From assembly GCA_964234715.1 (NCBI GenBank), contig OZ174286.1: DNA of 64,000 nt, one strand, 5' to 3'. Made by a program: the position numbers and the translations under genes. The notes beneath the pieces were generated by a model, which saw nothing but the letters and a program-made list of their open reading frames with translations, was not told where the DNA came from and made no database searches. This DNA comes from Podarcis melisellensis (taxonomy: Eukaryota). Shown one piece after another: positions 2,628-56,708 of this stretch; position 1 is the first letter of the stretch, and the number at the start of each line of letters is the position of its first letter.

Positions 2628-2747
2628 AGATGGCTTTGAAACAACTATATGACAAAAAGAAAGTGTTTTTGGAAAATCTGAGAACAAATTTTAGAGAACT
2701 GCAAGAAGCCCAGGTTCTTGCAGCTGCCGAGCCAGGTGGTATCAGTG
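2628..2747 (+). CDS. CCDC7-like exon a (120 nt, phase 1-1): MALKQLYDKKKVFLENLRTNFRELQEAQVLAAAEPGGIS
   Basis: tttgtag / gtaagt. Confidence 0.85.
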
Positions 2748-5700
2748 GTAAGTATTTTACTGGGCAATCCAAGTCATGGGAATGTGTCAAACAGCTCAGC
2801 TGCCAGTGATCCACCAACATAATAACCACAGCATCCAAACAGCATTTGGTGGAGTAGTCACTAGCACAATATGCCTATGACTGTATGATATCCACATGCT
2901 GCTCTCTGTTGCTTCTGCTCAGCCTCCAGCCAACTCTGCCCCTCCAGTCCACCCTCTCATTACTGTTGTAACTTTCTATTTATTCTCTGCACACTTCCTT
3001 CCTGCCCAGTATACTGCCAAAACACTCCTCTCTCTACCACTACTATGTCCTGGCAACCACTACTGCACACAGGCACTGTTGTCGGAGTCCATTATCGTCC
3101 TTGTCACTCCTTGAACTTTGACTCCTACTTGTTTGCTGTCTGGTTCCCCACCCTTTGGTCACCCCAAGTTGAGCTACCCTTCCACTGGTGTTGTGCCAGG
3201 CAGCCTAACCTCAACTGCTGAGCCAAGGTTTCTCTCCCTCCCTTGCTGCCTGTGAACCTTCCCATCCCTGAGTTAAGCCATGAGAACAAGTGATTGATGT
3301 TTTGGTATTTTTTCAAATTGAACTGAATAAAGGTTGCAACACAAGTATTGTGCAACAACCACCTCCCATGTTCACTTACTCCACAAAGAGAAGCAGATAC
3401 TAGTGTGCTCCCAATTGTACATTGGCAACGGAAAGTAGGTTTCCATTCTACTATCCATCAGCTGGTATGTAGGACCTTGGATCTAAGTAATCCTTTCTGG
3501 CAATAGTTCAATAATTCTCTGTGTGGCTTACAGTTCCTTTTACTGCACAGTTACCACTATACTTTTCTCATCTGTTATGCCTAATGCCTAAATTATTCAA
3601 TCTATAATCTACATCCTTTTCAAAAAATACTGTGTGACGGTTAAAGAGTAAAAATACTTATATTCAAAAGGCAAAAACTACATTTTGGTATATCTCATCT
3701 TTTATGTTAGTGTAAAATAAATGCATTTTGAGTTATGTTATATTCCTTTTTGTAGAGCTAAAGGTACAAGAGCTCATTCAGCAAAGAAGACTTTTGACTG
3801 CAGGTTTAGATGCAATTATGCAAAGCATGAAAGAGATAGAAAATCTTATTGCAGGCAATGTGGAAGTAGCAAAACCCAGTGGTGAGTATGAAATTTAAAA
3901 AAGTCATCAGACATGCAATACTTCAGAATTCTATTTTCACCTAAGTAGTGTGTGATAGAATGATGTGCTCAAAAATGTTCATCTCAGCTCCATACTGGCA
4001 AAGCTCTCTGATATGGACAGGGCCAGTTGCACTCCATGAGGGCTGTTGCTTCTTTCACTGCATTCCTCCATGGAATCTTGTTGCCAGACTTCTGACATAG
4101 TTACAGCCCTTGACATCTGCCCACCATTACCAGTGGACACTTCCAATAAAACTGTGCTCAGCTCTATAGTCTTAACAGCAGTGCTAATTCCAGTAAGTTT
4201 GCTAGTCTATCCATATGTGTGAATGTACAGAGACCATGAATAAGAACAGGGTGACTGCCTGCAGTTGTAGTTCTGCAGTTGTTTGTGCAAACACACAACT
4301 CCTTCCCTCCTTCCCCACTGCAGATATTTAGTGTGCTTGAAGTTTATCATATGACTATTTTATAGGGCCACTATATTGGTCAAGAATTTGAGCTGTACCC
4401 CTGTTGCATCTGCATGGAAGGACATCTACTAAAAATCTAGTTTAGCAATCTTCCCAAATGCACAGAGTGCATGTGTGTATACAAACGACAACCTGTTACT
4501 ATTTATCTTTGTAGAAATTGAATTAGAGAAAATATATGAGAAAAGAACATTGCTTTTGGAAAACATGGAATTAAATCTGCAAGAGCTGAAAGACCTTGCA
4601 AAAGGTGGTGTAAGTGGTAAGTAAAGTGTTAAATTTTAGTATGTTGTGCATTCCTGCTATTGGGCATAGCTTGGGCACCTGCCACCCAATCAATAAAAAT
4701 CAATACAAATCTGAGGTTCTGCCTCCCCTAACAAAAGCCTGCCCCCACAACAAAAATCCTGGCTATGCCCATGTTCTGAGAGTTATAACCAGAGCAAATG
4801 TGAGACAGAAGTTGTGTATTCCTGCTCCGTAGAACTCTTTGTGTTTGAAGCCATATACATGTGACATTCACTGCAATTCATATCTATCCTGTAGAGCCTT
4901 TAGAAATACTGCTGTTTGATGCATTTTCCTTTAAACCAGTTTTCATAAAATGCACTTCTCAGTTAAACTGAGGTGTGTACATTTAAGACAGTCTGTTGAG
5001 TAGGCAATCTGGTACTGTGGTATTGATGCTATTGAGTACCACTTCCTAAGATAATGTTATTTTTTATTAATAATCTTTATTAATTTTCATGTTGTATGTC
5101 CAAACAAATGCTATAAAGAAAGAAAAATATGACCAATAACAGAAAAAGGACAATTGATCTTACTTGAATAGTAGATTTATTAGGTGGATGATAGGGTATT
5201 TGGATTAGGCTGTTCCTCTTGCATGAGACTCAGGCAGGATCAAAGTATTGTGGGAGGTTTTTCAGACTTCAGTTTTTTGGACTTGCCAAAAGCAGGAGCA
5301 TTTTCAGAAGAATCTAAAAACCAATTAAACATACGGCCTACATGGGTAGATCTTACTGATAACCCTTGAAAACCATGGCTCTTTGAATGGGAGGAATAAC
5401 TTGAAAGATTGTGAGAAGCAATAGATGACCACGCTGGGTTTAGATGCTTTGTCTTTTGTTTTACTTTCTTATGCGTAAAACTACTCAACCTCAGATATGC
5501 AGATGATACAACCTTGATGGCAGAAAGTGAAAAGGAATTAAAGAACCTTTTAATGAGGGTGAAAGAAGAGAGCGCAAAATATGGTCTGAAGCTCACCATC
5601 AAAAAACGAAGATCATGGCCACTGGGCCCATCACCTCCTGGCAAATAGAAGGGGAAGGAATGGAGGCAGTGAGAGATTTTACTTTCTTGGGCTCCATGAT

Positions 5701-8700
5701 CACTGCAGATGGTGACAACAGCCACAAAATTAAAAGACGCCTGCTCCTTGGGAGAAAGGCAATGGCAAACCTAGACAGCATCCTAAAAAGCAGAGACATC
5801 ACCTTGCCAACCAAGGTACGTATAGTTAAAGCCATGGTTTTCCCAATAGTGATGTATGGAAGTGAGAGCTGGACCATAAAGAAGGCTGATCGCCAAAGAA
5901 TTGATGCTTTTGAATTATGGTCTGGAGGAGACTCTTGAGAGTCCTATGGACTGCAAGAAGATCAAACGCATCCATTCTTAAGGAAATCAGCCCTGAGTGG
6001 TCACTGGAAGGACAGATTGTGCAGCTGAGGCTCCAATACTTTGGCCACCTCATGAGAAGAGAAGACTCCCTGGAAAAGACCCTGATGTTGGGAAAGATGG
6101 AGGGCACAAGGAGAAGGGGACAACAGAGGACGCGATGGTTGGACAGTGTTCTCGAAGCCACAAAACATGAGTCTGACCAAACTGCGGGAGGCAGTGGAAG
6201 ACAGGAATGCCTGGTGTGCTCTGGTCCATGGGGTCACAAAGAGTTGGACACGACTAAACGACTAAACAACAACAACAACTCAAGCCTTGCAGAAACTCTT
6301 GAGGAAACCATGAAGATTTTCCATTTGCCGTGAAAGCAGACTGCGGGAGGGAAATAAGCAGCTGAAGGGCACTGTTGATTTCAATATTACTGTTGGCAAG
6401 ATGTGCTGCAATAGTCCTTTGTGCCGCTGAAATGGACAGGACTCACTGACATCTCTCCTTTCCGCCACTGCTGCGGACAGGAGGAAGATGATTTAATGCT
6501 GTGTTTTCTGTTGACTTCTTTTTTTCCCAACCAGCAAAATCACAGTTGTTGAAGTAAAGCCGGTGTGCTGAATAAAAGGTCCAAAGGATGCTGAGGCAAA
6601 CACGCAGAGCGGCTGTTAGTTGACAAAGCGCATGGTTGTTGCATCAGGCAGCCCACGCCGCAAAAATCATTAACGAAAATGATCCAACCACTGAAACAGC
6701 AGCAACAAGAACATAAAAAACAAGAAAGGAACGAAGTAAAAAATAGAAGTAAAGCAACTGAACACAGAATAGCGAAAGACCTGTAGCAAGGAGAAAGAGT
6801 GTTTTGTTTTAACCTTGACGGAGGACACGTAAAAATTGTGGGATGTCTACCTCCCACAGTTCTTTGCTCCTCTCTGAGTCTCGTGCAGGAGGAACAGCCC
6901 AGTCTGAATACTTCATCACCCACTGTCATAAATGGAACAAATCAAGACAATGTTATTTTAAATTGTGTTTTGTTACATTTTTATTGATTTTTCTACATAC
7001 TCTTCATAAAGTCTCACATATAGCATGTACAGGACAACATTGCACAACCTTTAGAGATTTAGACAGCACTCTAGCCTATGTCTTCAAGCAGCTCATATAT
7101 ATTTATTTATATGGGCTTACCGCATCCAATTGCTTTTGATGCATAAAATCTTTGGCAATCTGTCATTTGGGTACTAATGATTTCTGTCCACCTCTTCTAT
7201 TAGATACTAAAATGAATTTGTACAATGTGGCTGGTAAAACTATTCTGCAGCTATCTGGGCACATGGCATTTAAATTTAGTCTCTTTCAGTGCAACGTGCC
7301 CTCTGTAACAGCACTGTTTTTTAAGTTTACTTTTGTAGAGAACAGTTCTAAAAATGTAATTAGTAACTATCTTTTATCCAGAGAAGAAAATACAGGTGAT
7401 AAGTGAGAAAAGAAACCGTTTGGTTTCTAGTTTTGAGGCAATTCTTCAAAATATGGAAGAAGCACTTAGGTTAGACCAAGGAGCAAGGACAAGACCTGAT
7501 GGTAAGTCCAAAACAAAATTCCATGGAAATGGTGCTTCAGAGACACTGTCACAATAACTTCTGATTGCAGTTTGCTTCCAACCTAGAGCATTTTGTTCTA
7601 CAATACCTTTTCTGAGGATAATGTTTATTGACAGTAAATGCTGTTGTCTCTTGATTTTACTGTTTTATCTTTCGTAAATCATTTTGAGGGTTTTTTTTAC
7701 AAGCGAGCAGGGTATAAATCTTTATTAAATATATAAATAAATACATAAATAAATATCTCTATCCTCACAATGAGAACACAATCCTGTTTTCATGCAAAAC
7801 CAACTGAAAGGATTACAGGTTGCAGTGGCGTAGCGTGGGGGGTGCAGGGGGGGCCGGCCGCACCGGGCGCAACATCTGGGGGTTAGGGTAAGGGGGCGCA
7901 AATCCACGGGTTAGGGGGCGCAAATTACTTGCCTTGCCCCAGGTGCTGACAACCCACGCTACGCCACTGACAGGTTGCATTTTCTGCTGTTCTTTTCTAT
8001 AGCTCTGAAAAATGCCAAATAGGACCTGCCACTTTATTCCATCCTGCTATTTCAGAATTCTATTTGCTACAGAATCTCAATGTTGTATGATTCCAGTTTT
8101 AAAGGAAATAATAAATATTAATAAATATTGCTTTCTGTTATTGAATATAACCATTTTTACATTTCCTAGAGAGAAATATAAGTGATCTCATAGAACTTTC
8201 CAATCTAGAATCAAAACTGGATGAGATGGAAAATTTAGGAGTTTTTTCAGGCTTTCAACTGGATACTATAAGTGAGTAAAGAATTAACACCTTGTATATA
8301 CAGTAGCATGTATTCCAAACTGGATTTAGGCTGAGGTTTGCCTTTTTTAAAAAACAACTGGTCTATAAAGAACACAATATAATTTCCTTAGTAGATAAAT
8401 GCAAAAACCACTATTATATATAACAAAACATCTTTAAAGACATTTTTTTTCTTCATTTAGTTCATTAACATCTATTTTATTTTGTTAGGGAAAAAAATGT
8501 GCAAACTAAAAGAACAAAAAAAGAAATTGATTAGTAAATGGGAAAAATATTTTCTAGAAGAGTATCCAGAAGGATATATACCTGAACGTAAGTACAAATA
8601 TGATTATATTATTGGGTTATTGGCAATTTTAATGTCTTATAATTAATTCCTGTCAAGTATTTTTGTTCACCTGTGAATGTTAGTCAAGAAACAGAATTTT

Positions 8701-11700
8701 AAATGCATTATAAACATGCAACACCAAATGACGCCAAAGGGTATTTTTCTTTTGTTATAACAATTTAATTTTTTGACTTATTTATAGTGTTTTTTCCTGT
8801 GTGTAGATCCACCTCTGGTCAATAATATTCTGCTTCTTCAGGTGTATCTGAAGAAGTGTGCATGCACACGAAAGCTCATACCAAATTCTGCTTCTTGTAA
8901 GCCAAGGATGGGGAACCTCCAGCCCACCAGGTATTTCTGGACTGCAGATCCCCATCATCCATGACAATTGGCTATGCTGATTAGGGCTGATAGGAGATAT
9001 AATCCTACCACCTTTGGAGGGCCACAGGTTTTCTCATTCCTGTTGTAATCATTCTTTTCCATCCTCTTTCCAACCTAGTTTACTGTAACTGTACTAAAAA
9101 TGTTCAGTGCTGTCTTTCTAGAAAAAGAGGTTCTGGAACTCACCATGAACACATCCCTTGTTCCATTATAATGACAATGGCACCCATCTGAGAGGTGCTG
9201 GAACTGAGTTCCAATGAGTTCTAGCTGAAAAAAGCCCTGAGAATGTTCAACACAACTACACATGTCTTCAACTTTGGGGCATTGCCTTTTTTAATTCCCT
9301 GCTACCAGCTTGCAGATATAACATGTAAATGTATTGTGATAGAAGGTGAGCTATCGTGATTTACTAATCATTATTACCTGTTAGTTTTTCTTCCCTTCCT
9401 TACCATGCTTCCAGCTGCTTACTACCTCCTCGCTGCCATGGGGAAGCCCCACCCCATAGCTTCTCATAGTAACTGTATCTTGGGATTCCTTTGAAGCAGC
9501 TCTCTTCAGCATTCCCTCTCCTACCTCCTTGTGCTGACTTACCTGATGGAATGCACACATTCACCATAACTTCTGTAAGTTAATAGGTGCCAGGTGAAAG
9601 CACTCCTCTTCTCTCAGGCCTTTGGGCAAATTAAACTATCTGCGGCTTTTAAATGTGTGTGGGGGGGTATTGTTTGGTTTGCATTTTTGTGGTTTTACAC
9701 TGTACACCAGGGTGTATGGGATGTTAGGGGAGGGGTAGTACCTTTGGTAGGGGAATCATCGTGCTCCTTCTGGGGTAGTTTGACCACCTTTGTCCCCCAC
9801 CCTGCACTCAGCTCTCACCTGTGGCTCATAGAAGCTGTCAGCATGCAACAGCAGCCACACCCTGGGAAGGGCTTTGACTGGCTGGCTAAACCAGATGAGA
9901 GTAGTAAATGGCCTCAAACCATTGTTGAATTAGGAACTTTCCATGCATGTGAAGGCAGGCTCTTGTGGATTGAGTAGTTGAGACCAATTGTGGATACAAC
10001 AGTCAAGAAAGCAGCTTCTGCACAAGCTGTAGAGGGAAGTGAGGAGCAGGTGGGGCTCATCAACTTGGGAAAGTAGCCCATCTAGGAGAAGGAAAACTCT
10101 GATCCTAAACCTCTACTGCCTTCCAGGATATATTTGGGAGAAGAAACAGCTAAGGAGTAAACCTTACACAAATCAGGAGTGTAGGCTCTAAGATGGTTGG
10201 ATGGTGCCTTGTATGCCTTCTTCTGGCAGCTCCTGCTGCCCAGCTGGTGCCAAACACATTGCTCTGCTTTCCTTTAGACCACATCAGTGAGGCTGAGAGG
10301 AAGGTTTTGTCACCTGGGCAGCCTAGGACCGCCATGCACACTGCCCAGGTTTGAGCATTGGGAAGGTCACTTCAGAGCTGCTAATGCAGTAATTTGACTT
10401 CACCTCTGGAGATGCACTCCACTGTCTCTTGAGACAAATGGGTGCCAGCAATACTGTAAGCCACTGTGTGATCCTTGGACAAATGATTGTATGTAAATTT
10501 AATAAATAAAATAATAAATAAAAATACTTACCTTACACAAAAGTACTGTGCCTTCCCCGAAAAGCTATATCCTTCCTGACGTTCAAAACCTCTTCATTCT
10601 TTTATCTTTATTTTCAAAGGCCCAGTCTACATATTACATCTATCACAGAGAAATGTCAACAGATGATGGTGATAAGTTGTTAACGTATACAAAACACCAT
10701 TAATGTTGAAGGTGTTTTACAGAGTACAAAAGGTCACATGCCTACCACAATGGCATCACAATCTAAAATTCAACATGGAATACAAATGAAGAAGGGAGGA
10801 GGGAGTGGAGATGGGAGAAACATGGGAAGAATGTGTCATTATAGTAGTTACATGTAATTAGACTTAGTTACAGCATGGTATGTGAACTAGGGCAACCTCA
10901 TGGATACAGTGGCAGTTGAGGATAGGTTTTAGGTCAAAAGATTGGTTCTGGGAGGCAATTCTAGACATATGGCACAGCATGTGAGAAAAGTCAAAATTGT
11001 TTAAGAGAGCAGGGAACCTTTGGATAATTGAGAGTGGAGAAGCTCTGTAGCACTGGTGAACATGTACTACTTTCTCATCACATGGAGTGCCTCTGTGGCA
11101 GTGCCTTATGCTTTTGGATGGGATGGCACTGGCACAAAGTTTTATTTATTTATGATTAGTATTTGTTTAATTTATATCCCACTCTTCCTCCCCAAAGGAG
11201 CCCAAGGCTCTTGCCTCATGTGAAGTTAAATTAAATTTTCCACTAAAGGTTTGCTTTTGTTTTTGAAGCCACCAAAAAAGACAAAACACCCAAAGGATTA
11301 GCTGGAAAAGGTTTGTTCTCATATTTGCGATCAAGTATCAAAGATCTGCAAGAACAAGGCATTATTCGGCAAGATAGCATGTCTGGTAAGTATTGTAGTC
11401 AAACTTTCTGTGTTTCTTTGAGTTTTCTGAACAGATAGACTAGGGCAGGCTAGGGCTAGACTAGGGCAGATAGACTAGGGCAGTGCATGGGTTGCATTAA
11501 AGCTCCAAAGAGCTTTTGTGGTCCTTCTATAATGCTGACAAAATTTGTCATTTTAAATAATAAAAATAGTTGTTGCAGTTGTTAAAAAAAAAATCTTCTT
11601 ATTGCGTCTACGGGATCCCAGCTGTGATGCCAGCCTTCAGAGGGCTCTCAGCACCAATAGGCCACTCTGCTATCACATGGGCACACGCAAGCCACCTCAT

Positions 11701-14700
11701 TATGGGGGCAGTGCTGCTTTTTTCCTCTTTCCTCTGCTGCCTCCATTCTCCTCCTTTCCCTCTGCCCCTCTTAATTTTTTTAAAAATGTTCATTACCACC
11801 ATGTCAGCCCCATTTGCTAGACACTTGGACTTTGAGAGAAGGCCAAAGGCAGGGGTGGCACGTTCCATTTCAGTGCTCTGAAAATGTATAAAACATTTAT
11901 TTTCTGCCTTCTTGGTCTCCCTTTCTTTCTGCTGTTCTTCTAGTTTTATTTTAACCTGCTATTACAACGAAGGTGTGCAAATTAGTTTTTGCTTTTTTGG
12001 GGGGAGGGTTCCATAGTCAGGAAGCCATAACTGAAGTTTCAATCATCCCAATCCCACTTAAAGGATGCTAGGGACTTGGGTTTGATTTATTGGGTCTCTT
12101 AAATTTGTGTGTGTTGGTGCTTTATTGTACACCTGTACATCTTTTCTGTACACCTGAGTGAAATTTGAGCTAGGTACAATTAGTTATTATTTATTTATTA
12201 CCCACCCTTAAGTCCATAAAGTAAGTATATTTTTCAATAAAAACTGAAAAGTAGACTGCTCAGAAGTTTTTAAACTTAAAATCACAAAATCATAGAATGG
12301 TAGAGTTGGAAGGTACCTGAGGATCATCTAGTCCAACCCCCTGCAATGCATGAAAATGCAGCTGTCCCATATGGGGATCGAACCTGCAACCCTGGTGTTA
12401 TCAGCAACATGCTCTAACAGGCTATCCAGGAATAAATTCAAATTATTTTTCTTAGAGGTAGAATTGGATCAGCTAGCAAAAGAAAAAAGAACTGTGGACA
12501 GATATTTTGAAGAAGTTCCAATAGAATTCCTGCCTTCAGAGGTTGCTGCTTTAAGTACACAATATGAGGGTGAGTGGGAAGAATATAATATAGTAGGATT
12601 AACATATCTGATGGTATTGTTTAACAAAATCCAAGAACTTATACAGAATTGTTTGACCCAAGGATATAACTGGGGGTTTTTTCTGAATGAGGAGCAGTCA
12701 CAGGAATAAGACTTGTAATATATTGTAATATTACAGTACATTGTAATAATAATCTTTGCAGAACAAAACCCCCAGAAAAGGGTTGTTAATATATTCCACA
12801 AAATGTGGTAAAGATCACTGGTTTAGAGCTTAGATAGTTTTAAAGGATCGAGGAAAGAATGAATAAATATATTCACCTACATATTCCTGAGCTCCTGATT
12901 ATTAATATGTAACAAGTAGCAAACTCTTTCATTACGATCAGCAAGGGTGAAGTCTCTTTTGCAGGAAGCATTAGCACCAGTAGCCCTCCTCTCAAATTAC
13001 ATACTGCATTTACTTTAGCCCATGGAATTCATTGGTTGTCAGACTCAGAACCAGATGTATCATTAGGCAGAATAAGACAACCATTTCAGGTGACAGATAC
13101 TTTGGGGGAGGGGTGAGAACACGGATGCAGCAATGCCCTAGCTGTCCTCTTCTGTTGGTGCGTGGCTTTGGAATGACCTGCTGCATCATTGTGTAACCAA
13201 AAATCATGGTGAGACAAATTGCTGTTTTATCAAGGAACTAATGCTTGATTCTTATTACGTCTGAGCAATCTGAGCTGAACAAATTTATATTCCAAACCAG
13301 GTTATGTTGTCATCATGTCTAACTTGGCGTTCGAAGAAAATACAGTCGTACCTTGGAAGTCAAACGGAATCCGTTCCGGAAGTCTGTTTGACTTCCGAAA
13401 CGTTTGGAAACCAAAGTGCGGCTTCTGATTGGATGCAGGAAGCTCCCACAGCCAATTGGAAGCCGCAGAGGCCCTGTTGGATGTTCAGCTTCCAAAAGAA
13501 CGTTAGAAAACTGGAACACTCACTTTCGGTTTTCGATTGTTTGGGAGCCAGAAAGTCTGACTCCCAAGGTGTTCGGGAGCTGAGGTACATCTGTACTGGA
13601 GGCTAGCAACCCAATGATTCTATGCAGTTTTCTACTTTTATGAAAAATAGAGCTAGTGAATAGGTATTACGGTCCAGTCGACTCTCATCTTTTGTGCAAG
13701 TTATGTTCTAGGGATAGCATGTAAAGCCAAAATGACATATAGTCAAAACAGCCCTTTAAACACCAGAAAATGGCTTGTAAAAAGCACAGTGCAGCATTTA
13801 CTGGTTCCTGGTGACTGCATTACTTAGTCTGTGCACTCTCTAACTGTACTTCTAAACACTCTCTCTGCACCTCTGAACACTCCCAAGGTGAGTGCAATGA
13901 AGGGTGGGATTGCTGATGTTTTCCCTGCAATACCCACCCACCCCCTTTTCCCCAGCCAAGCACGTAAAGCTGAATTCACACCAGTTTAATGTGCATAAGT
14001 TGAGAGTCAGCTTTGTAAGAAATCTAACATTCTTTATCTGGTGGAATTGCATGCAGAATGTGTTTGACATGTACTGGGTCCACCTTCAGAAAATTTTCAA
14101 AACTTGTACACTTTTTTGTTTTGTGTAACTGCAATTTACTCTACTACTTCTGGCTGTGGCTTTCAGAGACTCTGAAATATAGATAAGCCCCTGTGATCCT
14201 ATATAGTTCCTGTGATTAAGTATACATATTTTATTTGTTTTATCTTATAGATGAGAAATCATTAAAACGAAGGGCTTTGGCTGCAAAATTGGAGGCAAAT
14301 ATAAGAGATCTTCAATCTGCTCTTCAAGTAGATAAACTAGAAAAACCTAAATTTGAGAGTGAGTGCAAAGGCAAATTATATAGCAGACACATCTTTTGCT
14401 CAGAAAATAGTTAATTACACAGTCTTTTGTCCAGGGCTTTTTTCAGCTGGAACTCACTGGAACCCTTCTGGCCCCTCCCAGTTCTGGCCCCTCCCAGTTC
14501 TGGCCCCTCCCAGTTCTGGCCCCTCCCAGGTGTGTACCATTGCCTTTATAAGAGAACAAGGAAAGCACCTTTTTCTAGAAAAAATACACTGCTTTTGTCA
14601 ACCAATAGATAAAACTATAAAACATGGTTAAACGATGTCCCACAGTCATCAGAGTGTTGGATCAGTTGCAACAGGAAACCATCTATGTCAGCCCTTAAAT

Positions 14701-17700
14701 GCCTGCTGAAAAATTTGTTCTACCAGTTATAGCTTTCCACAATGGTTAATTGTTGTCTCCTGTTATCTTTGTTATATTATTTTTATTATGCTTAATGTAT
14801 TATTGCTATAAACCACTTTTATACTCTTTCTTTTTATGATATAGCAGTATATAAATATTTTATAAACAAATAAATAGAAATACTTAACTACAAGAATGAG
14901 TTGCAGCAAGCCTCTTGCTTGTGCATACTGCCCTTCCCCTTTCACACTCACAAGGTGGAACTGCTCATGGGTGTGAAGCACAGTGATATCAGAACTCAGG
15001 GAACTGTAAACGTATCTTTACATATGTTTTCTAAGCATGGTTAAATTCAAGTGTTCTCATCTGTGGATGCTGACTTGAGTCGAAAAATTATGTAGAGTGT
15101 TTACATACATTTATGAGGGTCGCTCATTAAAGATTTCCCCTGACCCACTTCCGGTTATCGCAGGAGGATGAAATTGCACTTATATAATGATACATCTCTC
15201 CACAGGTAACGTGGTAATTTGTAGCTCTGAACTCCTAACAGTTGCTCTGCTACAGGTGCTAACGTGGAGTAATGTCTGATAATGGTACCAGTTGAATGCA
15301 GAGTGGTCATCAGCATCCTGTACTTGAAAGGGTGCACACCACGGGAGCTATCTGATGAGATGAAAAGGACTTATGGGGAGGATGCCCCATCGTATGATGT
15401 AGTCAAGCACTGGCATTGCCTGTTCAAGTGTTGTTGGACTTCGGTGGAAACTGCTCCCATTCCTGGGTGATCACAGTCTCCCATTGATGAAGACACCAAG
15501 TGGAGGCCACCATTTTGGAGGATTGCTACATAACCGTTCACCACCTAGCTGCAGATGTCAAGATCAGTGTGGGCTCTGTAGAAAAAACCCCATCCATGAC
15601 CATTTATACATGGGAAAGGTGTCCGCACGGTGGATTCCCCGGCTGCTGACGCCTTTCCAGAAGCAGGAACGAGTCACATGCTCACAGGCTCTTTTGGCCA
15701 TGTGTCACAAACCCATGATGACTTCTTTGCCAGACTAATTACTCAGGATGAAACATGGGTCCATCATTATGACCCAGAGACTAAATCCCAGTCCAAGCAA
15801 TGGAAGCACTCTGTTTCACCACTTCCAAAGAAGGCACATGTCCAACTGTCAGCGGGCAAGGTCATGCTCATGGTCTTTTGGGACTTTTCCATTCCACCTT
15901 TAGTTGCAGACATGGAACTGTTGCATGTCACATGTCTGTTTACGTTCCAGCACAGCTTGCTGGGAACTTCCATTGTGTGTATAGCTTTTGCTTTTCACTG
16001 TCTCTCTGAGGAGAACAAAGGGAAGCGACATGTTTTCTTTGTCCTGATTTATGCTTAATAAATCTGCAGCTTGTAGTACGTTTCCACAAGCCTCACACCT
16101 GTTCTGTTTGCGCAGTATGCATCTGCTAATATAGCGTGCTCAGGCTTTTGAATTCTGAGTCGCTGATTTACATCACACCAGAGATCGGGGGATCATCACG
16201 GCTGGAAAGGCATGATCCAGCTGGGAGCTAGCCAGCTGGCATCTCGACCCCCGAAGGATGCCAACACATGGAGCAGTGGTGATGGATTTCCTGGTAAAGG
16301 GTGCCACAATTACCAGGACATACTATGCTTCACTGCTGCAGAAATTGAGGAAGGCCATCAAAATTGAGGGGCATGGTATGCTGACCAAAGTTGTCCACCT
16401 CCTGCAGGATAATGCCCCGGTTCACAACTTGCATGTTTCTCAGACGGAAGCACAGTCCTGTGGCTATGAAGTCCTTCCTCCCCCCCCTTATTCTCCTGAC
16501 CTCACACCATCGGACTTCCACCTCTTTCCAACCATGAAGTTATTTTTGAAGGGCAAGCATTTTCCAGACGATGAAATGCTGATTTCTGAGGTCATGTTAT
16601 GGCTTCTAACACAACCTGCCAACTTCTACAGACGAGGTCTCCACAGCTGCATAAAACAATGGGGGAAGTGTGTGAATCTTGCTGGTAGCTACATAGAGAA
16701 GGACTAATAACTGTGCCCAGTTAAGTTAAGGGACACAGGTGGCGCTGTAGGTTAAAGCCTCAGCGCCTAGGACTTGCTGATCGAAAGGTCGGCGGTTCGA
16801 ATCCCTGCTGCGGGGTGCGCTCCCGCTGCTCGGTCCCAGCGCCTGCCAACCTAGCAGTTCAAAAGCACCTCCGGGTGCAAGTAGATAAATAGGGACCGCT
16901 TACCAGCGGGAAGGTAAACGGCATTTCCGTGTGCACCAGAGCAGCGATGTCACACTGGCCATGTGACCCGGAAGTGTCTCCGGACAGCGCTGGCCCCTGG
17001 CCTCTTAAGTGAGATGGGCGCACAACCCCAGAGTCTGTCAAGACTGGCCCGTACGGGCAGGGGTACCTTTACCTTTTACCTTTAAGTTTGTCTCAGTCCA
17101 AGGGAAGTACATCAGGGGAAATCTTTAATGAGCGCTCCTCGTATATACACACATCTAAAAGGTTATGGAATGTCCTCTGGGAACCAAAGGAGAAAGGAAA
17201 GGCTTTTTACCATGAATTCCTGTTACCATTTTATCTTGGAGGGCATTCCACCCACCACTGTATATTCCAGCAGACTATGGTTATCCTCCTCAGGCTTATA
17301 CCGTTGTATACATTTCAATGAAGTAGGGAGGGATTCCTGGGAGAGTTTCTTTCTGGTTTGTTTCATCTCCTGTCTCCTGTTCCTTCAGCTGTTCAGTATT
17401 GTGCTTCAGTTATGACCTCTCCTTCAGGTTTTTTTTATATAAAAAAAGATATTATGGCTTCTTTTGTTCTTCTATTCTGGTAGCCCTTCCCAGATTGGGA
17501 AGATGATCCACATTTTTGGATCCTGCCTGCTGTCCACAGGGAAATACTATCTTGAAGGTTCTGGAGTGTGCTCCAGGAGTCACAATGAACAGGAATTTAC
17601 AGGAAAGCCTCCCTTTCTCTACTTCCTCAGCTGCAGGTTTATCTGCAGGTTTATTTTATACTTTGCATTGATGAAGCTGATGTATGTTCTATTGTAGCAA

Positions 17701-20700
17701 AAGGAAGAACAAAATAAAAAAGTTGAAATGTAATAGTAGAGAGGTATTAAGTGGCTAGCTGTTTTTAGTCAAGGTTTAATGGGTCTATCTTGATTGAACA
17801 TCACGAGTGACTTCCTCCTGCCTCTCAACTCTTTCATTTTCAGCATCTTATTTACTTTGTCTTTTCTTTTGGGAAGGATTCCACATCCTGGGGATTGGAT
17901 GGGGGATCAGTTAATCTCTTCAGTGCTACAATGAAGCAACTGGAGGTCACATGCAGCAGCCCAAACCCAAGATGTGGTGTGGTATCCTGTGGCCACAATG
18001 GCTCTCACCATATGAATCTGTATTGCTATGATATCAAGTATTTAAATTCTCCACAGCAGGGTTAATCTACAAGTGGAATATTCAACTGCTGCAAGGGACT
18101 GCAAGTTTTGCAACATGGTTGTGTTTTTTAGGGGGACGGGAATTGTATATTGGACCTATTTCATCTTATTCTCTCCATAACATGCAAATAATCTCTCTCA
18201 GTACCAAAAAGCGTTTTACGGACAACAGGCAAACGGAGACTTAGTTCACTTGAGCCATCAGATCAGCTCGCATTGAGACCACAACTTTCAGGGCTGCAGA
18301 TACACATAAGTAAAGTACCTGGTAAGTACAAAACGTGTTATCTAAAGTATCGTGTGTGCTTCCAAGGATGCTCCTTATACTGTGCATTATTTGATATGGT
18401 TACTGAGGACCCGAATGAGGACCCGTGACGGTGGCAGGAGAGCAAAGAACTCTGGGAACTCTAATCTTCTCTGTCAGCTAAGTGTTTTTATCTTCAACAA
18501 CACTTTATTTTTACTTCTTTACTCTTCCCTCCTATATCCTTTCACTTTCTAGTATTGTGTGTATGTCCATTTTCAAACTTTACTCCTTTGTTTTCTTTCC
18601 TCCGCTGAGGTTAAATAAATAAAAACACACACACACAAAAAAACCCCCACCCCTCCTGCTTCCCGTTTTGCTTTTGCTTTCCCTTCTCATTTCCTTGTTT
18701 CCTCTATTTGACTGCAGGCAAGGCATTTTGTTGTTGTTGTTTTACTACTGATTATTTTGGATCCTTGAAGTGCCAATGGTTTTTCTATCATGCAACCATT
18801 GGCCTTCTCAACTGTCCTCTTCCATTACCGGCTCCTTAGCAACGGTTGCTGCCTCGTTCCCGTTGTGCGATTCCTCAGCAGCGTGTTCTGCTTTGCACAC
18901 AGTTGCCTGTTTATAACAGCTGGTGCCTGGCAAAACATTACATTTCACAAAAGGGTGGGATATTATGCAGTTGCAACAAAAGAATAAGGAGAATGTTGTT
19001 TGTGATGATGATATACTCTCAGATGTTTTTCCCTAGAACAAACATTGAAGGCAGGTTGAAAGATTAATAATGAGACAAGGAGTGCATCATCAAATTTCTT
19101 GCTTCATTTGGTTCTAATTGTCCATTTGAAATATATATATATTAGAATGCATTACTAGGTGTGTTTTTAAGTTTGCTTTATTTGCTATGTATAAATATTA
19201 TTGTGTTGCCTTGAATGTCTATTTTGATATGAGTAGAGGAATATAAATGTGAAAAGTTTATTTACACATTAAACAATATAACATATTCAGAAAATTAGCA
19301 TGATCTTACTGAAAGTGGTTAAAAGTGTCTTGTATAAAAGTAATATGAAATTGCAAGGCTGCAGTCAAGGATTTTTGTTGTTTTTGTTTTTATCTTTCAC
19401 TTAGTGATTAGTTTGATTGAAGCTGGACATTTAGGTTCATGAAACAGAGTGCATGTTTGTAATATGCCTGTTCACTCTGAACTCACACTTATGAAATCTA
19501 TGCTTGGGCACAGCTAGCTTCAGAAATTTCTAGAATGTAGGCAAAGTTATTGATGTTTAACCTTCTCTCACACAAAGGAGAGGTACTTATGCCTTAAGAG
19601 GTGGGGGTTTTGCCTTCCTTCTTCTCAAGCCTCTTCAAGCCACTGTGTGGACAGATACCATGGGGTATTGCAGTTATTGAGGTCACTGGCAACTATGTCA
19701 CAGCCACTAAATGTCAGATAGGAGACCAGATGGATCTAGTCGAGAAAACTATCAAAGGGGGAGGAACCTGGTAGAGAAAATAAGAAGAGACAATGGCTGC
19801 AGCAGTGGTTCAGTTCAGAATGACCATTTTGCAGACATGGAGCACTCTATCCCATGTTCTCTCCTCTCTGGATAAATTATCCTGCTATCAGCATTATGAA
19901 CAGTGTAGACTATCGTCTTGGGACAAACCTGATATGGTGCAGTAGACCAATTCATCCTAGACAGATTATTCAAAGTGCCCATTATCATGATAGTAGAAAT
20001 TATTCAGATGTCCAGGAGAATAAGCCCTCTGGTGGAGATTGTAGTTAATTGAACAGCAAAATTATTGTTGCTCCTTACGTTTAGTCAGAATTTCCTTTCT
20101 TGTAACTTGAATTCATTGATTTGGGACTTATCCTCCAGAGCAGGAGAAAACAAGCTTGCTCCATCTGCGATATGACAGCCCTTTAGATATTTGAGGATGG
20201 CTATCATATCTCCTCTCAGTCTCCTCTTTAACTGGCTATATTGCTTTGATATATTCCAATAATCTTGTCACAGTGGATAATCTAGAGAAGAACCTTGCCT
20301 ATAATTTGTATAATGTAATTCCAACCCCCACCTGTGGAGCCAAAAATGAAAGCCTATACAGGTAGAGAGATAACAGAGACTGAACTGAGGAAGAAGATTT
20401 GAAGATGTTTGTTTAATATTTGTAGGCTGGTAGATCTTTTGTGAATATAGTTCACTGGAGAGATCCCCTCTGCTATCACGTTGGTTTTTCAAATTACTTG
20501 AGCAATTTTCTATTTTTAATGCAGTTCCATTAGTTAAGGCTCTGTTTGGCGTCTGCTGCTTTCAAAGTTATCAGCTGGATGATTGCCTGAGGGAGCAGAA
20601 CAGTCTTCACTGCTTTTTGGATACACATCTGTAAATTACACTGAGCTATGGGTTACAACTCAGTTGCTTTGGACTGGTACTATAAATAAGTCAAAGGACA

Positions 20701-23700
20701 GCTTACCTATCAGGATCCAGCTGACTATAGTAGAAAATCATTTTTCATGTATGGAGAAAACTTATTTGTGTCAACAGTTAACTTTATGTATGAATATTTT
20801 CCTCCCCATTGTGCAATGGGAACATATAGTGGCAAACAGAATCAAGCGTGATAGCAAAACAGTAGATGCAGGATACGATACGACAGTCCAGGAGGAGCAA
20901 GACCAACTTCTAAGTAAGTCTTATACATGCTTACCATGCTCCCATGTAAAATGGGACACTGTTGAAAATCAACTTTAAGGAGGTAATGCACATTTAACCA
21001 TAGCCTTTATTTTGACAAGGTATTAACTCCACCCTTTAAAACATTTATATCATTAGGATAATATTGGGTTGAGGAATTTTTGAATCTGATGGGTGGTGGT
21101 TGAACCTTTTAGATAAACCACCATGTGCAGTCCCTTCTACAACATGCACAAGATCAGTGGGTATAAGAAAATCTACTGCATCCTGCTGCTAAAATTATGT
21201 GTGCACATGGTACTTACTCCAGCCAACAGAATCTCAAGCATATAGAAGGCACATAGTCCTGATATCACCTGGTGGGGATTTGGTACTGACAGCACTGTGG
21301 GAAACTTAAACATTTCCAAGGTAAATTATTAACTGTGCTGTTGAAGGACCACATATTTTGACAGAGAACAAATATTCAAGAAAATATGAAATAACATATC
21401 CATTAGTCATGCAAATATTACTGTGCAGTTTAAACCTTATTTTATAGATTAAAAACAAATTACTTGGTATCTTGTATTCTTTGCAATTTATTGGTTGTGA
21501 ACTGTCAGTTGTTAGGCTTTATATTAATAAGCCCTTTTCTGTGTCTGTCTTTGCAGAGAGGGACATAGAACTGGCATTAAAAGGACGGCATCTGGAAGAA
21601 TTTCCAGAGAGCAAAGTATCTTTGCCACAATTGGATAGTTCTTCTTACCTTCATGCAAATTCACATAGACTTGCTTGTAAGTAATGATTAGTATACATGA
21701 TGGGATATGGGCTTGATGAGTGAGTAAAATATGGGGTCCTGATTTAGGTAGAGAACAATAGAGTATTAAGACCAGTCAACAGACAACCTGCCAGACAAGT
21801 GTAGATTAAAGCATTTTATTATTTAGCAAGAAAAATTTGACAAACATCCTCCTCATACTACCAAAGCTTAAACATTTAAAAGGAGAAGACATTTTTACAA
21901 CTCTGGAGGTGGAACCTCTCAGTCAGAAGAGCTTAAGACATACATTTCATAGTTTCAAAGCTTCTCTAGACCTTGGCTTGATGATGCCAAACTTTTAGTT
22001 TTCAAGTTTGGATCTCACCTCAACCAATCAGATTCTGCTGATGGTGCAGAACTGGCTAACCTCTCCTATTTTTATGTCTTAGTCTGCTTGTTAAGACCCT
22101 TGCCTCCATCTGATTACTTAACATACCATATTTCATATCCTGTCCAGAAAAATATAACAAACACTTCTAACTTCACTAGATCAATTTGAAATTCATCCTT
22201 CCCCCTTTCCAGAAGCATTTAATCACCAGACAAGCTGAAACTTTCAATACCATTCACAAATTTGGTAAATGTAAAAGCCTAAAAGCAGTTAGCAAAGATT
22301 ACCCACCTGCAGTTTTGGATAGTGGATATGCAAGAAAAAATAAATGTTTTTAGAATGTTTTTTGAATTAAGTAAACAATTTGTTTTGTTTCAGTGGAGGC
22401 TGCAATGCAAGAAATATTAGAGTTTAACAAGAATTTACTTCCAAGCCATAGAACAAACCTGCAACAAGCATTGCATCTTGCAAGTTATCAGTTACAACAA
22501 AAACAGCTACAACAACAACATCAAGCCAATGCGCTTGGTAAGGAATGGGTTAATTGTGTACAAATATGGCATTCAGACTCTTTGTTACATTTCCATTTAC
22601 CCTGTGAGTATGCTGTTATCATGAATTATTTGATTATTTTAATCAAATTTCTGTGCAAATATTTTAAATTACTTACATCTTTTTTTTTTTTAAAAAAAAC
22701 CACTTTAAAGTAACTTTTCCTGATTATTTGAACTGGTGTCTTCCTGAATACACCCTTGCATCTCATTGCAATGTGATTTTTAAAATTTCTAAGTTATTTT
22801 TTAAAACAGAGATGTTAAGATGTCTTGATGTTAAGATGTTAAACAGAGATGTCTTGATTTCTCACTGTATTTTATTCCTCCCATCTCCATTTAAATATTG
22901 TCCTATGTCTTAGAATGCATTACTTTCAAAGACCACCCAGTGCATTCATAATCATGATGATACCTCCCTCTAGATCAGTAAGCTTTTCATAGGAAGGGGT
23001 GGGGGGTGCCCTGTTCTCCAGACTGAATCTGCCTGGTGCGCAGTAGAGTCTTTTCAAGCTCCCAAGAGCTTGACTTTTCTGAGCTTCTTATCCCTCACCA
23101 GCCCAACACATCCTTAACATGGATGAGAGGCCATTTACATAGGGATGGGAGGGGGCAACTGTTGATCCACAACTTGAGTGAAAGCTTTGTATTTTCATGG
23201 CTTGGGGCAGATACATGGATTGGGCTGTGTGTGACAGCATAGTTACAGAAAGACAAACTGTGGCAAGATGCTCAGGCCTGCTGCAGCCTTCTCAAGTACT
23301 GCTGCCATAATAAAGACAAGACACAGCAACACTGAATAGAAGGGCTGTTTTAGTGTTCGTCCATTTCACTCCTATCCATATAGGGAAGGCAAGGGCCAGG
23401 GCCAGAGAGACACCATCTCCTCAAGGAACAAGTTCTATGATGGCACACTTTCTAGCATTCATGGAAAGACCAGAAACCTGCAATGAGATGAGCCAGAGGT
23501 GCAGATCTTTGGGGCACTAAATTCATGTGAAGTGGGGGACATGAGACACAATTTCATTCTGCCAACACTACTTCCTTTTTAGTTTATGGGGTTTATCCAA
23601 TGGAATGGGTGTTCACCCTGTCACGAGAAACTAGACAGGAGCAGACTTGTGGCAAGTAGGCTGGACTCCCTCAGTTTTTCCTCCTGTCTAGACACAGACA

Positions 23701-26700
23701 GTACATTCCTCCTGGCTCTCCTGACTCAGCTAGGTTTTTTACTAGTTTCTGAACCCCCCTTTTTTCTTTTGGTTTTCCTTATCGTCATTTTTGTTTTACA
23801 GTTCTTTGTCCGCATGTTGTGGTTTCTTCCACACAAAAAAACTTTCTGTTGCTCTGTACGTTTGGTTGTTCTGCTTATTTGCCACCCTTCTTTTATTCCT
23901 TAGTTGTTTACTTACATTACTTATAGATAAATTTTCCAGAACGGTTGCCCTTGCCGTGGCGCCAATGGTCATTCAGGCATGGCAGCCCTCTTTTGGTGCA
24001 CTCTATTTCTTTCCCTCAGCAGCCTCAATGGCTGCCACCATTTATCTTGGGTCAGAACTGTATTTATTTATTTTGTTGGTGTGTGTGGTTGTGTCCTACT
24101 TGTGTGACTGGTAGTGTGGCGTTTGCGTTCTCCTGCCCTGATTTAAAAATGGCTTGGCCAGCTCCTCCTGGTTTGCTTTTTTTTACACCGGCAATGGAGT
24201 GAGTGTTCCTATTATGTCCCTGCCTGACTGCTTCTATTTGCCTTTAATATTGAGCCCTGACTGCCTCCTGGTTCACTTTGGAGGCGACAGTGCCTGCCCC
24301 TCATCGTTATCCTCCTGGTTGGCAGCTGTGACAAGGAGTGTGTGTGTAGCTGCTGTTTTCCTCCACTCTCAGTCCACGGTGTGGCAAACAGTGTGTGGTT
24401 TGGCATAAGGCTTTTGCCTGCCTCTTTTCTCCTGATCCATGGAGTGCAAACCTTTGGGGCTGAATTTCTATAATCTTCCTCTTAACGATAAGAACAACAA
24501 ACATTATCTTCCCAAAACAGGAGATGTAGAACACCATTGCTGTTCATTACTGTAGCTGGAAACCTGAAATGCTAACCGGAATATATGGCTAGATGTCACA
24601 CATTTTTTTTCCATTTAAAAAAACTATTATTTTTTGCTTTCTTAGGCTTGCTTTTCATTAGAATTATTGGATTGTTCTGTCTCTCATACAGACTGTTTTG
24701 TGTTTTAATTTTCAGCTGACAAGTTCAGAAATATGCCATTATTTCCCCCACCACCACCTGGGACAGCTAGGTTCCAGGACTATACTATACCTGTTCAAAA
24801 ATCAGGTAACCTATAAAGTTGGCTGTATAAAAAAAATATCCCAATTTGGGGGGGGAGTGTATCTCATTCATACTGTAGGTTGCATTTGTTCTAGTATAAA
24901 CCATGTTTGATAGTAATGTTCCAAGGGAAGGGCATGTTCAAGGTGTTATACAAACAATTACAACAGAACTTAATTCATAAAATCTCTGAACAAAATCCTA
25001 GCATTCCTAGCTGAAAATATACTCCTCAAGTGTCAAAAGTCAGGGTAAAGTAGTGGATCATGGCATGCTGTACAATTAAGGTACCAGACACACCTCTGTG
25101 GGGACGGAGTCCCGCAATTTGTGGACCACCACAGAGAATGCCTTCTCCTGAGCAAGCACCTCATGAGGGTTTATAGGGAAAGAAGCAGTCTTTCAACTAC
25201 TATTTGGGGCCTGAGTCATTTAAGGCTTTAAACACTAATGTGAGCACTTTAAATCAACCCAGGAAACAAGCTGGTTCACAGTGCAGCTGTTTTAATACAT
25301 GGGCTATATGAGATCTAAATGAAACCAGTCAGTAATTTTGCTGCTGCATTTTAGACCACTTAAAGTTTCCAAGTCATATTCAAGGGCAACCTCATGTAGA
25401 ATGCTTTGCAATTATCCAATCTGCAAGTTAACGTGTTAGCCAATTGCCCTGTTAAATTTATTGTCCCATGCTGCCTCAGAAACTAATAAGGGAGGGAAAT
25501 CATTTGACTTGATAAAGAAGATTCTTTTTGCTTTCGATCAGTGGTTCCCAACTTTTTTTGGCCATGCCCCACCTAAGCATCTCTAAAATCCTGATTCCCA
25601 CCCCACCCCGTGACACATACCGCTAATTCTTATTATTCCAAAAGTATACTCCTATGCACATGGAGGAAGCCTAAAAGGCCATTAGCTTGGTCTAAACAAG
25701 CTTCAAAATTGCCCCCCTTAAAAATCAAATTGCCCCCCTGTGAGGCATGTGCACCACTTTGGGAACCACAGCTTTAGATTTATTAGGGAATGGCAGACTG
25801 TGTCTCTGTAGTCTACTTGATACATTTATGCATTCATAGTCTCTCTCACACTGTAGTCACCAAAAATTGTTATATAAACTGTTTCCATAAAAGTGATTAT
25901 AATTATTTTTGATCAGTTACAAAGACATTCCTGTATTCAAAACAACATTGTGTTTTTATATATTTCCTATGCAGGATGGGAAACAAACCAGTTACCACAA
26001 AAAGACTACCTCCAAAAGCTTGCATTATTAAAACGAAAGATTTTGGGGCCAGAGATGAAAGGTAACGAATCTCAGTGGAAAAGGGTTCTATATTCACTTT
26101 GGATTTAAGAGGGCAGGTTATCTTCTAAAATTCCTACAAAATGTCAAGGGAGGAGAAAATGTCTCTGTGTGGGTTGGCAGAATGGAAACCTCATACCACT
26201 GAAAGGCAAGAAATTTCTGGCAGCTGCAATTTCTATACTGCACTTTGCAGGGCAGTTTACAATATAAAAACACCAGAATACATAACATAGTAATAAACAG
26301 AAACAATACCTCCACCTACTTTAAAAGGCCATAGAGTGTTTAGTTAGCCAAAGGCCTGGAAGAAGAGGAATGCTTTTGCCTGTGCAAAATGAAGGCTCCT
26401 CAGATGATGATCCTGTTAGATTTGTAAGTCAGTTGGCCCATAACCTGTTAGACTTAGACCATCTCACACTCCTGCCAAACTGCTGCTGAATCTACTACAC
26501 ATACATATATTCCTTAGAAAAAGGGAGGGTGGATGAGGCATGCTTTAGGCTTGGACTGTCTCTAACAAGCAGACATGGGGGATGGGCTGCTCAATACATG
26601 GCCCAAGCAGTGCAATTTCACATTTTTCTCCAAATTACACGAACAGATTGCAGGATCCAGGCCAGTTCATATGGGGAGAGGTGATCCTTGAGGTATTGCA

Positions 26701-34069: not shown

Positions 34070-56708
<22,639 letters not shown>

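Follow-up and report, generated by a model that had tools for sequence, protein, structure and literature searches.

The question raised by the locus described here is which gene could harbour a long succession of exons that all share one intron phase, and how such a succession came into being. The window, i.e., the whole stretch of 64,000 nucleotides (nt) analysed from the lizard Podarcis melisellensis (GenBank assembly GCA_964234715.1, contig OZ174286.1; G+C about 41%, zero N), had been described in a preliminary account, made without database searches, as containing a hidden gene between positions 2628 and 26061, built from 15 consecutive symmetric phase-1 exons and possibly corresponding to CCDC7. 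On the evidence set out below, this interval is considered, with a probability of about 0.9, to represent the last 17 coding exons (596 codons), roughly the last third, of a + strand CCDC7 orthologue belonging to the BioT2 family, and the phase run to be the footprint of tandem exon duplication.

A phase-1 exon series at the end of CCDC7

When the window was scanned for AG-exon-GT segments that are open in phase 1, every one of the 15 exons was recovered from the + strand, with order and lengths as given for them earlier. Each has a length divisible by 3, is of phase 1-1, is preceded by AG and followed by GT, and at all 15 junctions the split codon is a sense codon (Glu in five of the first seven). 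The series joins without a stop into an exon of 50 nt running from phase 1 to phase 0 and from there into a terminal exon, the exact architecture proposed in the preliminary description, whereby 596 codons are obtained overall for exons 1-15, the 50-nt exon and the terminal exon ((1653+50+87-2)/3) and 16 phase-1 introns or boundaries are counted within the window. As every exon is symmetric, the frame is kept when any one of them is skipped or duplicated, just as had been claimed. The formal properties alone do not discriminate, being shared in the exon interval by 366 + strand and 293 - strand segments, and this abundance is what could be held in favour of the run being an artefact of choosing AG...GT open segments in non-coding DNA. 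Such a chance origin is given practically no credence, as spliced contigs were found for exons 10-13, colinear orthologue matches cover every exon and nothing elsewhere, and a matching exon-by-exon structure exists in a boa. Furthermore, when the 366 + strand segments were ranked by a simple splice-site score, the top 16 places included all but one of the 15 exons; the exception, exon 11, has a weak acceptor and ranks 59th. No upstream exon candidate was found in positions 1-2627 at the splice thresholds used.

Compared with Pfam, the 15 exon peptides yielded no significant family (best expectation value E=0.035, below the cut-off), and identification was achieved by comparison with proteins of relatives. 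A word search with exon 13 gave no candidate, which its restriction on candidate length would lead one to expect. A whole-library search with exon 13 returned two matches near protein C-termini, namely a 1204-amino-acid (aa) Elgaria protein named 'plectin-like X6' (76% identity to exon 13) and a 2636-aa Rhineura protein named 'protein lava lamp' (73%), the latter carrying an N-terminal BioT2 domain (E=1e-30). When mapped onto the window by tblastn, residues 2029-2635 of the Rhineura protein were colinear with all 15 exons and the terminal exon. In the 'uncharacterized protein CCDC7 isoform X1' of Podarcis muralis (3034 aa), residues 2439-3034, i.e., 596 residues, match all 17 exons with 82-100% identity each, while the Lacerta and Zootoca orthologues show 76-77% identity, which places the source of the window among the lacertids near Podarcis. 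On the + strand, no orthologue match at E<0.01 lay outside the model exons. The 'coiled-coil domain-containing protein 7' of the turtle Mauremys matches window exons 2 and 9 only. Searches with such natural proteins yielded about 30 models from squamates, the majority of which contain BioT2; for several, CCDC7 is the name used by the source (source-named proteins, the turtle included, come from Podarcis muralis, Pogona, Paroedura, Liasis, Pantherophis and Mauremys), and 19 squamate models besides that of Rhineura combine BioT2 and the matching C-terminus in a single protein. The assignment to CCDC7 put forward earlier was right; the word 'hidden' does not apply, as the gene is annotated in close relatives such as P. 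muralis.

The exons are as follows, with A and B denoting two repeat types and X1-X3 denoting the sequencing runs whose contigs are treated in the next section; identities refer to P. muralis CCDC7.

2628-2747, + strand: exon 1, 120 nt, phase 1-1; A-type repeat; 87.5% identity to isoform X1, aa 2439-2478
3756-3881, + strand: exon 2, 126 nt, phase 1-1; B-type repeat; 97.6% identity to aa 2479-2520
4515-4616, + strand: exon 3, 102 nt, phase 1-1; A-type repeat; 88.9% identity
7382-7501, + strand: exon 4, 120 nt, phase 1-1; B-type repeat; 86% identity
8170-8271, + strand: exon 5, 102 nt, phase 1-1; 94% identity; 1:1 orthologous exon in Candoia
8489-8587, + strand: exon 6, 99 nt, phase 1-1; 96.9% identity
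11269-11385, + strand: exon 7, 117 nt, phase 1-1; skipped in Podarcis isoform X4 models
12456-12569, + strand: exon 8, 114 nt, phase 1-1; skipped in Podarcis isoform X4 models
14251-14358, + strand: exon 9, 108 nt, phase 1-1; degenerate repeat; 100% identity; skipped in Podarcis isoform X4 models
18202-18321, + strand: exon 10, 120 nt, phase 1-1; strong donor; in spliced contigs of runs X1-X3
20830-20913, + strand: exon 11, 84 nt, phase 1-1; weak acceptor; joints on both sides in runs X1-X3
21557-21676, + strand: exon 12, 120 nt, phase 1-1; joints on both sides in runs X1-X3
22394-22537, + strand: exon 13, 144 nt, phase 1-1; conserved helix and Gln-rich tail; joint in runs X1-X3
24716-24805, + strand: exon 14, 90 nt, phase 1-1; Pro-rich; 96.7% identity
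25975-26061, + strand: exon 15, 87 nt, phase 1-1; best-conserved C-terminal motif
27111-27160, + strand: exon 16, 50 nt, phase 1 to 0; top splice score downstream of exon 15; 100% identity to aa 2989-3005
27534-27623, + strand: terminal coding exon (17), 29 codons and TGA; 100% identity to the last 29 aa

The 3' untranslated region probably reaches to about 27714, which fits the length of the RNA-like contigs.

Spliced transcripts

Evidence for splicing was obtained from three small runs (X1-X3) of one study on a close relative or the same species, which are recorded merely as 'RNA?' and whose tissue is coded. Each run provided one contig of 3511-3594 nt with a depth of 300-480, and when compared with positions 18150-24149 the contigs were found to cover exons 10, 11, 12 and 13 but not the intervening sequence. 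The resulting GT..AG joints lead from 18320/21 to 20829/30, from 20913 to 21557 and from 21676 to 22394. In addition, the contig overhang before 18202 equals the 3' end of exon 9, its last letter excepted, and that behind 22537 equals the start of exon 14, with one letter differing. The DNA run X4 spans the introns and is devoid of the exon 10-13 joints; a processed copy as their source was ruled out on these grounds, and the joints therefore document splicing. The predicted joints 10-11-12-13, for which the preliminary description had asked spliced reads, were thereby found, and exons 10 and 11, the weakest two of the model, were directly confirmed.

Two small deletions were observed alongside. 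The RNA-like runs X1-X3 carry an in-frame deletion of 3 nt in the Gln-rich part of exon 13 (22509), and DNA run X4 shows a deletion of 16 nt in intron 10 (18330), nine bases past the exon 10 donor.

Repeat exons and the origin of the shared phase

Comparison of the exon peptides with shuffled sequences revealed that part of the series consists of related units, with z-scores of 9.8 for exons 1 and 3, 8.4 for exons 2 and 4 and about 6 for the pairs 4-9, 7-9 and 4-6. Homology, with z ranging from 4 to 10, is found among exons 1-4 and 9, with exons 6 and 7 being weaker members, and exons 10-15 showed no similarity to the repeat or to one another (z<3 against shuffles). On the DNA level the similarity of exons 1 and 3 reaches a few bases into both splice sites; beyond these few bases, the introns around the A/B units showed no alignable similarity, and the last duplications are therefore regarded as old. 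Both in the window and in Candoia the boundaries of the repeats are the boundaries of the exons. This correspondence recurs in an AlphaFold model of the Rhineura counterpart (608 residues), in which each repeat exon corresponds to one confident helix of about 30-38 residues and the helices are interrupted at the exon borders; as confidence of the model was low (mean predicted local distance difference test, pLDDT, 53.6; predicted template modelling score, pTM, 0.28), helix positions alone were used, and the regions matching exons 10-12, 14, 16 and 17 are of low confidence.

In the model held to be highly probable, an ancestral symmetric exon, encoding one helix of about 32 residues and a short Gly/Pro linker, was copied repeatedly, mostly as an A+B pair, with each copy inheriting phase 1 and an unbroken phase 1-1 run being the outcome. 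Exons 1-4 of the window are then the last two A/B pairs, exon 9 and the weaker exons 6 and 7 decayed copies, and exons 10-15 unique C-terminal exons of the same phase. Given this symmetry throughout, the length could be altered by unequal crossing-over or by the skipping of exons while the frame stays intact. The encoded protein would be a segmented helical rod of evolvable length, presumably under weak constraint on its sequence and strong constraint on its open frame.

Tandem symmetric-exon repeat genes are represented by nebulin with its 35-residue repeats, the PEVK region of titin and the two-exon doublets of NBPF/Olduvai, which have in common a repeat per exon or exon pair, a single intron phase, a copy number that varies between lineages and in-frame skipping. 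CCDC7 resembles them in this organisation, but its sequence is unrelated and its unit is a helix with a linker in alternating A and B exons. Its introns are moreover of phase 1, a class mostly considered in connection with shuffled extracellular modules. In the abstract of one paper, exon phase symmetry is presented as the key signature of frame-preserving module exchange and is tied to disordered regions (PMC3632108). The CCDC7 array fits that frame, but involves duplication within a gene and not exchange between genes.

Expansion of the array in squamates

An A profile derived from exons 1 and 3 and a B profile derived from exons 2 and 4 were run on the orthologous proteins, which revealed long alternating ABAB arrays with 24-52 repeats in squamates as compared to 5-7 in turtle, rhea and alligator. 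The individual counts are:

Paroedura: 24 repeats
Zootoca and Pogona: 32 each
Snakes: 34-37
Lacerta: 38
Podarcis, three species: 42, 44 and 46
Anolis: 45
Lerista: 52
Turtle: 7
Rhea: 5
Alligator: 5

Squamate CCDC7 proteins, in which the 40-residue repeat occurs 24-52 times, measure 2100-3150 aa, whereas those of rhea, alligator and turtle, with 5-7 copies, measure 880-1386 aa. The gene spans 419 kb in Rhineura and 125 kb in Varanus.

Exon maps were obtained by placing gene models on their own DNA. In the model of the boa Candoia, 19 phase-1 introns succeed one another before a phase 1-to-0 exon and a last exon of 29 codons are reached, and from exon 5 on its exons correspond 1:1 to those of the window, with all length differences being multiples of 3. 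In Rhea, the BioT2 part has introns of phases 0,0,0,0,2,0,0, after which 12 phase-1 introns and the same terminal pattern follow. The phase-1 run is older than the split of squamates and archosaurs and was greatly lengthened in squamates, the A/B array having grown 5- to 10-fold after squamates parted from other sauropsids. For Podarcis-like lizards, 46 repeats and 11 unique exons add up to what are probably more than 50 consecutive phase 1-1 exons. The 15-exon array of the preliminary description is a real run, but represents merely the tail of a much longer same-phase array.

The exons diverge fast, as had been supposed from the unfamiliar protein sequence. Summed over exons 5-15 (365 aligned codons), comparison with Candoia gave an amino acid identity of 41%, a proportion of synonymous differences (pS) of 0.45, a proportion of nonsynonymous differences (pN) of 0.36 and a ratio of nonsynonymous to synonymous divergence (dN/dS) of about 0.7. 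Only in exons 13 (pN 0.21, pS 0.67), 15 (pN 0.17, pS 0.64), 9 and 5 is pN clearly below pS, and frame, splice sites and lengths divisible by 3 were retained in every lineage examined. Selection seems to act more on an open, helical and modular protein than on its exact sequence.

Weighing the explanations

Several points weigh against the reading of the interval as the end of a CCDC7 gene shaped by tandem exon duplication. As the window does not reach the 5' two-thirds of the gene, to which the BioT2 exons belong, membership is deduced from orthologues; exons 10-15 are dissimilar, and their shared phase may stem from older decayed copies or from ancestry instead; the repeat counts come from gene models, and assemblies may collapse or inflate arrays. 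As for the transcripts, runs X1-X3 are known to us by their 'RNA?' record and a tissue code, and their contigs have 1633 nt upstream of exon 1, while the full-length model of P. muralis needs about 7.3 kb.

The last of these points leads to the idea of a separate or additional unit, in which a promoter inside the repeat array would give rise to a C-terminal protein of about 1100 aa without BioT2. The contigs of runs X1-X3 all begin exactly 2641 nt before exon 10, that is at the aforementioned 1633 nt before exon 1, and with their 3511-3594 nt they fit an older P. muralis model of 1106 aa named 'myosin-14-like', whose first residue is an internal Met located 510 residues (1530 nt) ahead of exon 1; models from Elgaria, Sceloporus, Heteronotia, Varanus and Candoia likewise begin inside the array and are without BioT2. 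In that older annotation the P. muralis gene was represented by two separate models, 'CCDC7' (521 aa) and 'myosin-14-like' (1106 aa), but the current RefSeq version fuses both into one CCDC7 gene. BioT2 and this C-terminus are moreover united in one protein in 19 squamate models, and a contig end common to three assemblies could be a branch point of the assembly graph instead of the start of a transcript. A separate short unit is thus regarded as possible but doubtful, and the abundant transcript may be a short C-terminal isoform or may reflect a break in the assembly.

A further idea, brought up in the preliminary description, is that the symmetric exons constitute a working cassette system in which regulated inclusion and skipping tune protein length for function. 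Apart from every exon being frame-neutral, RefSeq models of relatives speak for it: in Podarcis muralis and P. raffonei alike, isoform X4 is devoid of 113 aa corresponding exactly to exons 7, 8 and 9 (339 nt), Elgaria isoforms X6 and X7 are devoid of one 41-aa B exon and of one 81-aa A+B pair respectively, and Anolis isoforms are devoid of blocks of 42, 43, 48 and 82 aa. These skipping isoforms are computational predictions, however, and the contigs of runs X1-X3 give only the full-inclusion form of exons 10-13, with the reservation that contigs drop rare variants. Frame-neutral skipping is furthermore expected as noise in any same-phase array. What stands of the cassette proposal is that whole exons are skipped in frame in the models of relatives and that copy number varies by species, whereas a purpose or a regulated tuning of length is unsupported and such a system is deemed unlikely. 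A simpler view is that duplication made the exons frame-neutral as a by-product, whereby both evolutionary changes of copy number and tolerated skipping are permitted. Rated lower still is the suggestion that array length itself would be a selected, fast-evolving trait of a structural protein of the male germ line, shaped for instance by sperm competition, with whole-exon skipping adding isoforms. Tandem exon duplication at the end of CCDC7 remains the preferred explanation.

The ITGB1 neighbourhood and intronic elements

Downstream of the exon series, the window contains a gene that is placed tail-to-tail with CCDC7:

34070-55723, - strand: ITGB1; Pfam matches to Integrin_b_cyt, Integrin_B_tail, EGF and PSI_integrin

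From the - strand frames 37541-37852, 38087-38392, 39768-40019 and 55520-55723, Pfam recovered the cytoplasmic, tail, EGF and PSI domains of integrin beta. About 6 kb separate the end of CCDC7 from the 3' end of ITGB1 in the window, and a tail-to-tail arrangement of CCDC7 and an integrin beta gene was also found in Rhineura, Candoia and Rhea, where the gene models lie 2.6-3.5 kb apart. The location of CCDC7 next to the ITGB1 3' end, stated for mammals in the preliminary description, thereby holds for this lizard and for these three relatives. Two alternative terminal exons of ITGB1 were identified on the - strand (34070-34129 and 36662-36730), each with twin NPxY motifs, reminiscent of forms A (ubiquitous) and D (muscle) of integrin beta-1.

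The introns of the CCDC7 interval harbour traces of mobile elements. In intron 9 a remnant of a Mos1/mariner-type transposase is located at 15306-16374 on the + strand (Pfam Transposase_1, E=1e-6; HTH_48, E=0.0035, below the cut-off). Intron 10 holds at 20079-20230 a very high-copy element of about 100-150 nt, for which a word depth of 3-5 x 10^5 was found in DNA run X4 as compared to about 80 around it; the element also occurs on many short contigs of the RNA-like runs and is probably a short interspersed element (SINE). Frames at 5400-6250 on the + strand of intron 3 resemble a fragment of a reverse transcriptase from a long interspersed element (LINE), with a YADD-type motif recognised by eye; the two short pieces tried gave no Pfam match.

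Naming and significance

CCDC7/BioT2 (Pfam PF15368) is a coiled-coil gene expressed in testis and tumours and located beside ITGB1 in mammals. Expression of Biot2 was reported to be high in testis and cancer cells (PMC7838428). By analogy with the mammalian gene, lizard CCDC7 may have a role in the male germ line.

Automatic annotation has given the squamate orthologues a wide range of names: plectin-like, myosin heavy chain-like, lava lamp, rootletin, golgin A4/B1, AKAP9 and GRIP and coiled-coil 2, and further COP1-interactive protein 1, CEP250-like, nesprin-1, pericentrin, MLP1 homolog, interaptin and NuMA1. In the library searched, nothing was found in connection with CCDC7 and reptiles on the exon array, its squamate expansion or the naming, and a paper on circCCDC7 gave no information on exon phase.

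Against this background, the expansion of the A/B array in squamates and the chaotic automatic naming are modestly new. The main value of this work lies in clarification, as the gene is known and annotated in relatives and exon duplication accounts for the symmetric run. With squamate CCDC7 scattered across annotations under more than a dozen coiled-coil names that are unrelated, its orthology is obscured in comparative studies. Squamate CCDC7 ranks among the longer same-phase exon arrays and may as such be of interest to specialists.

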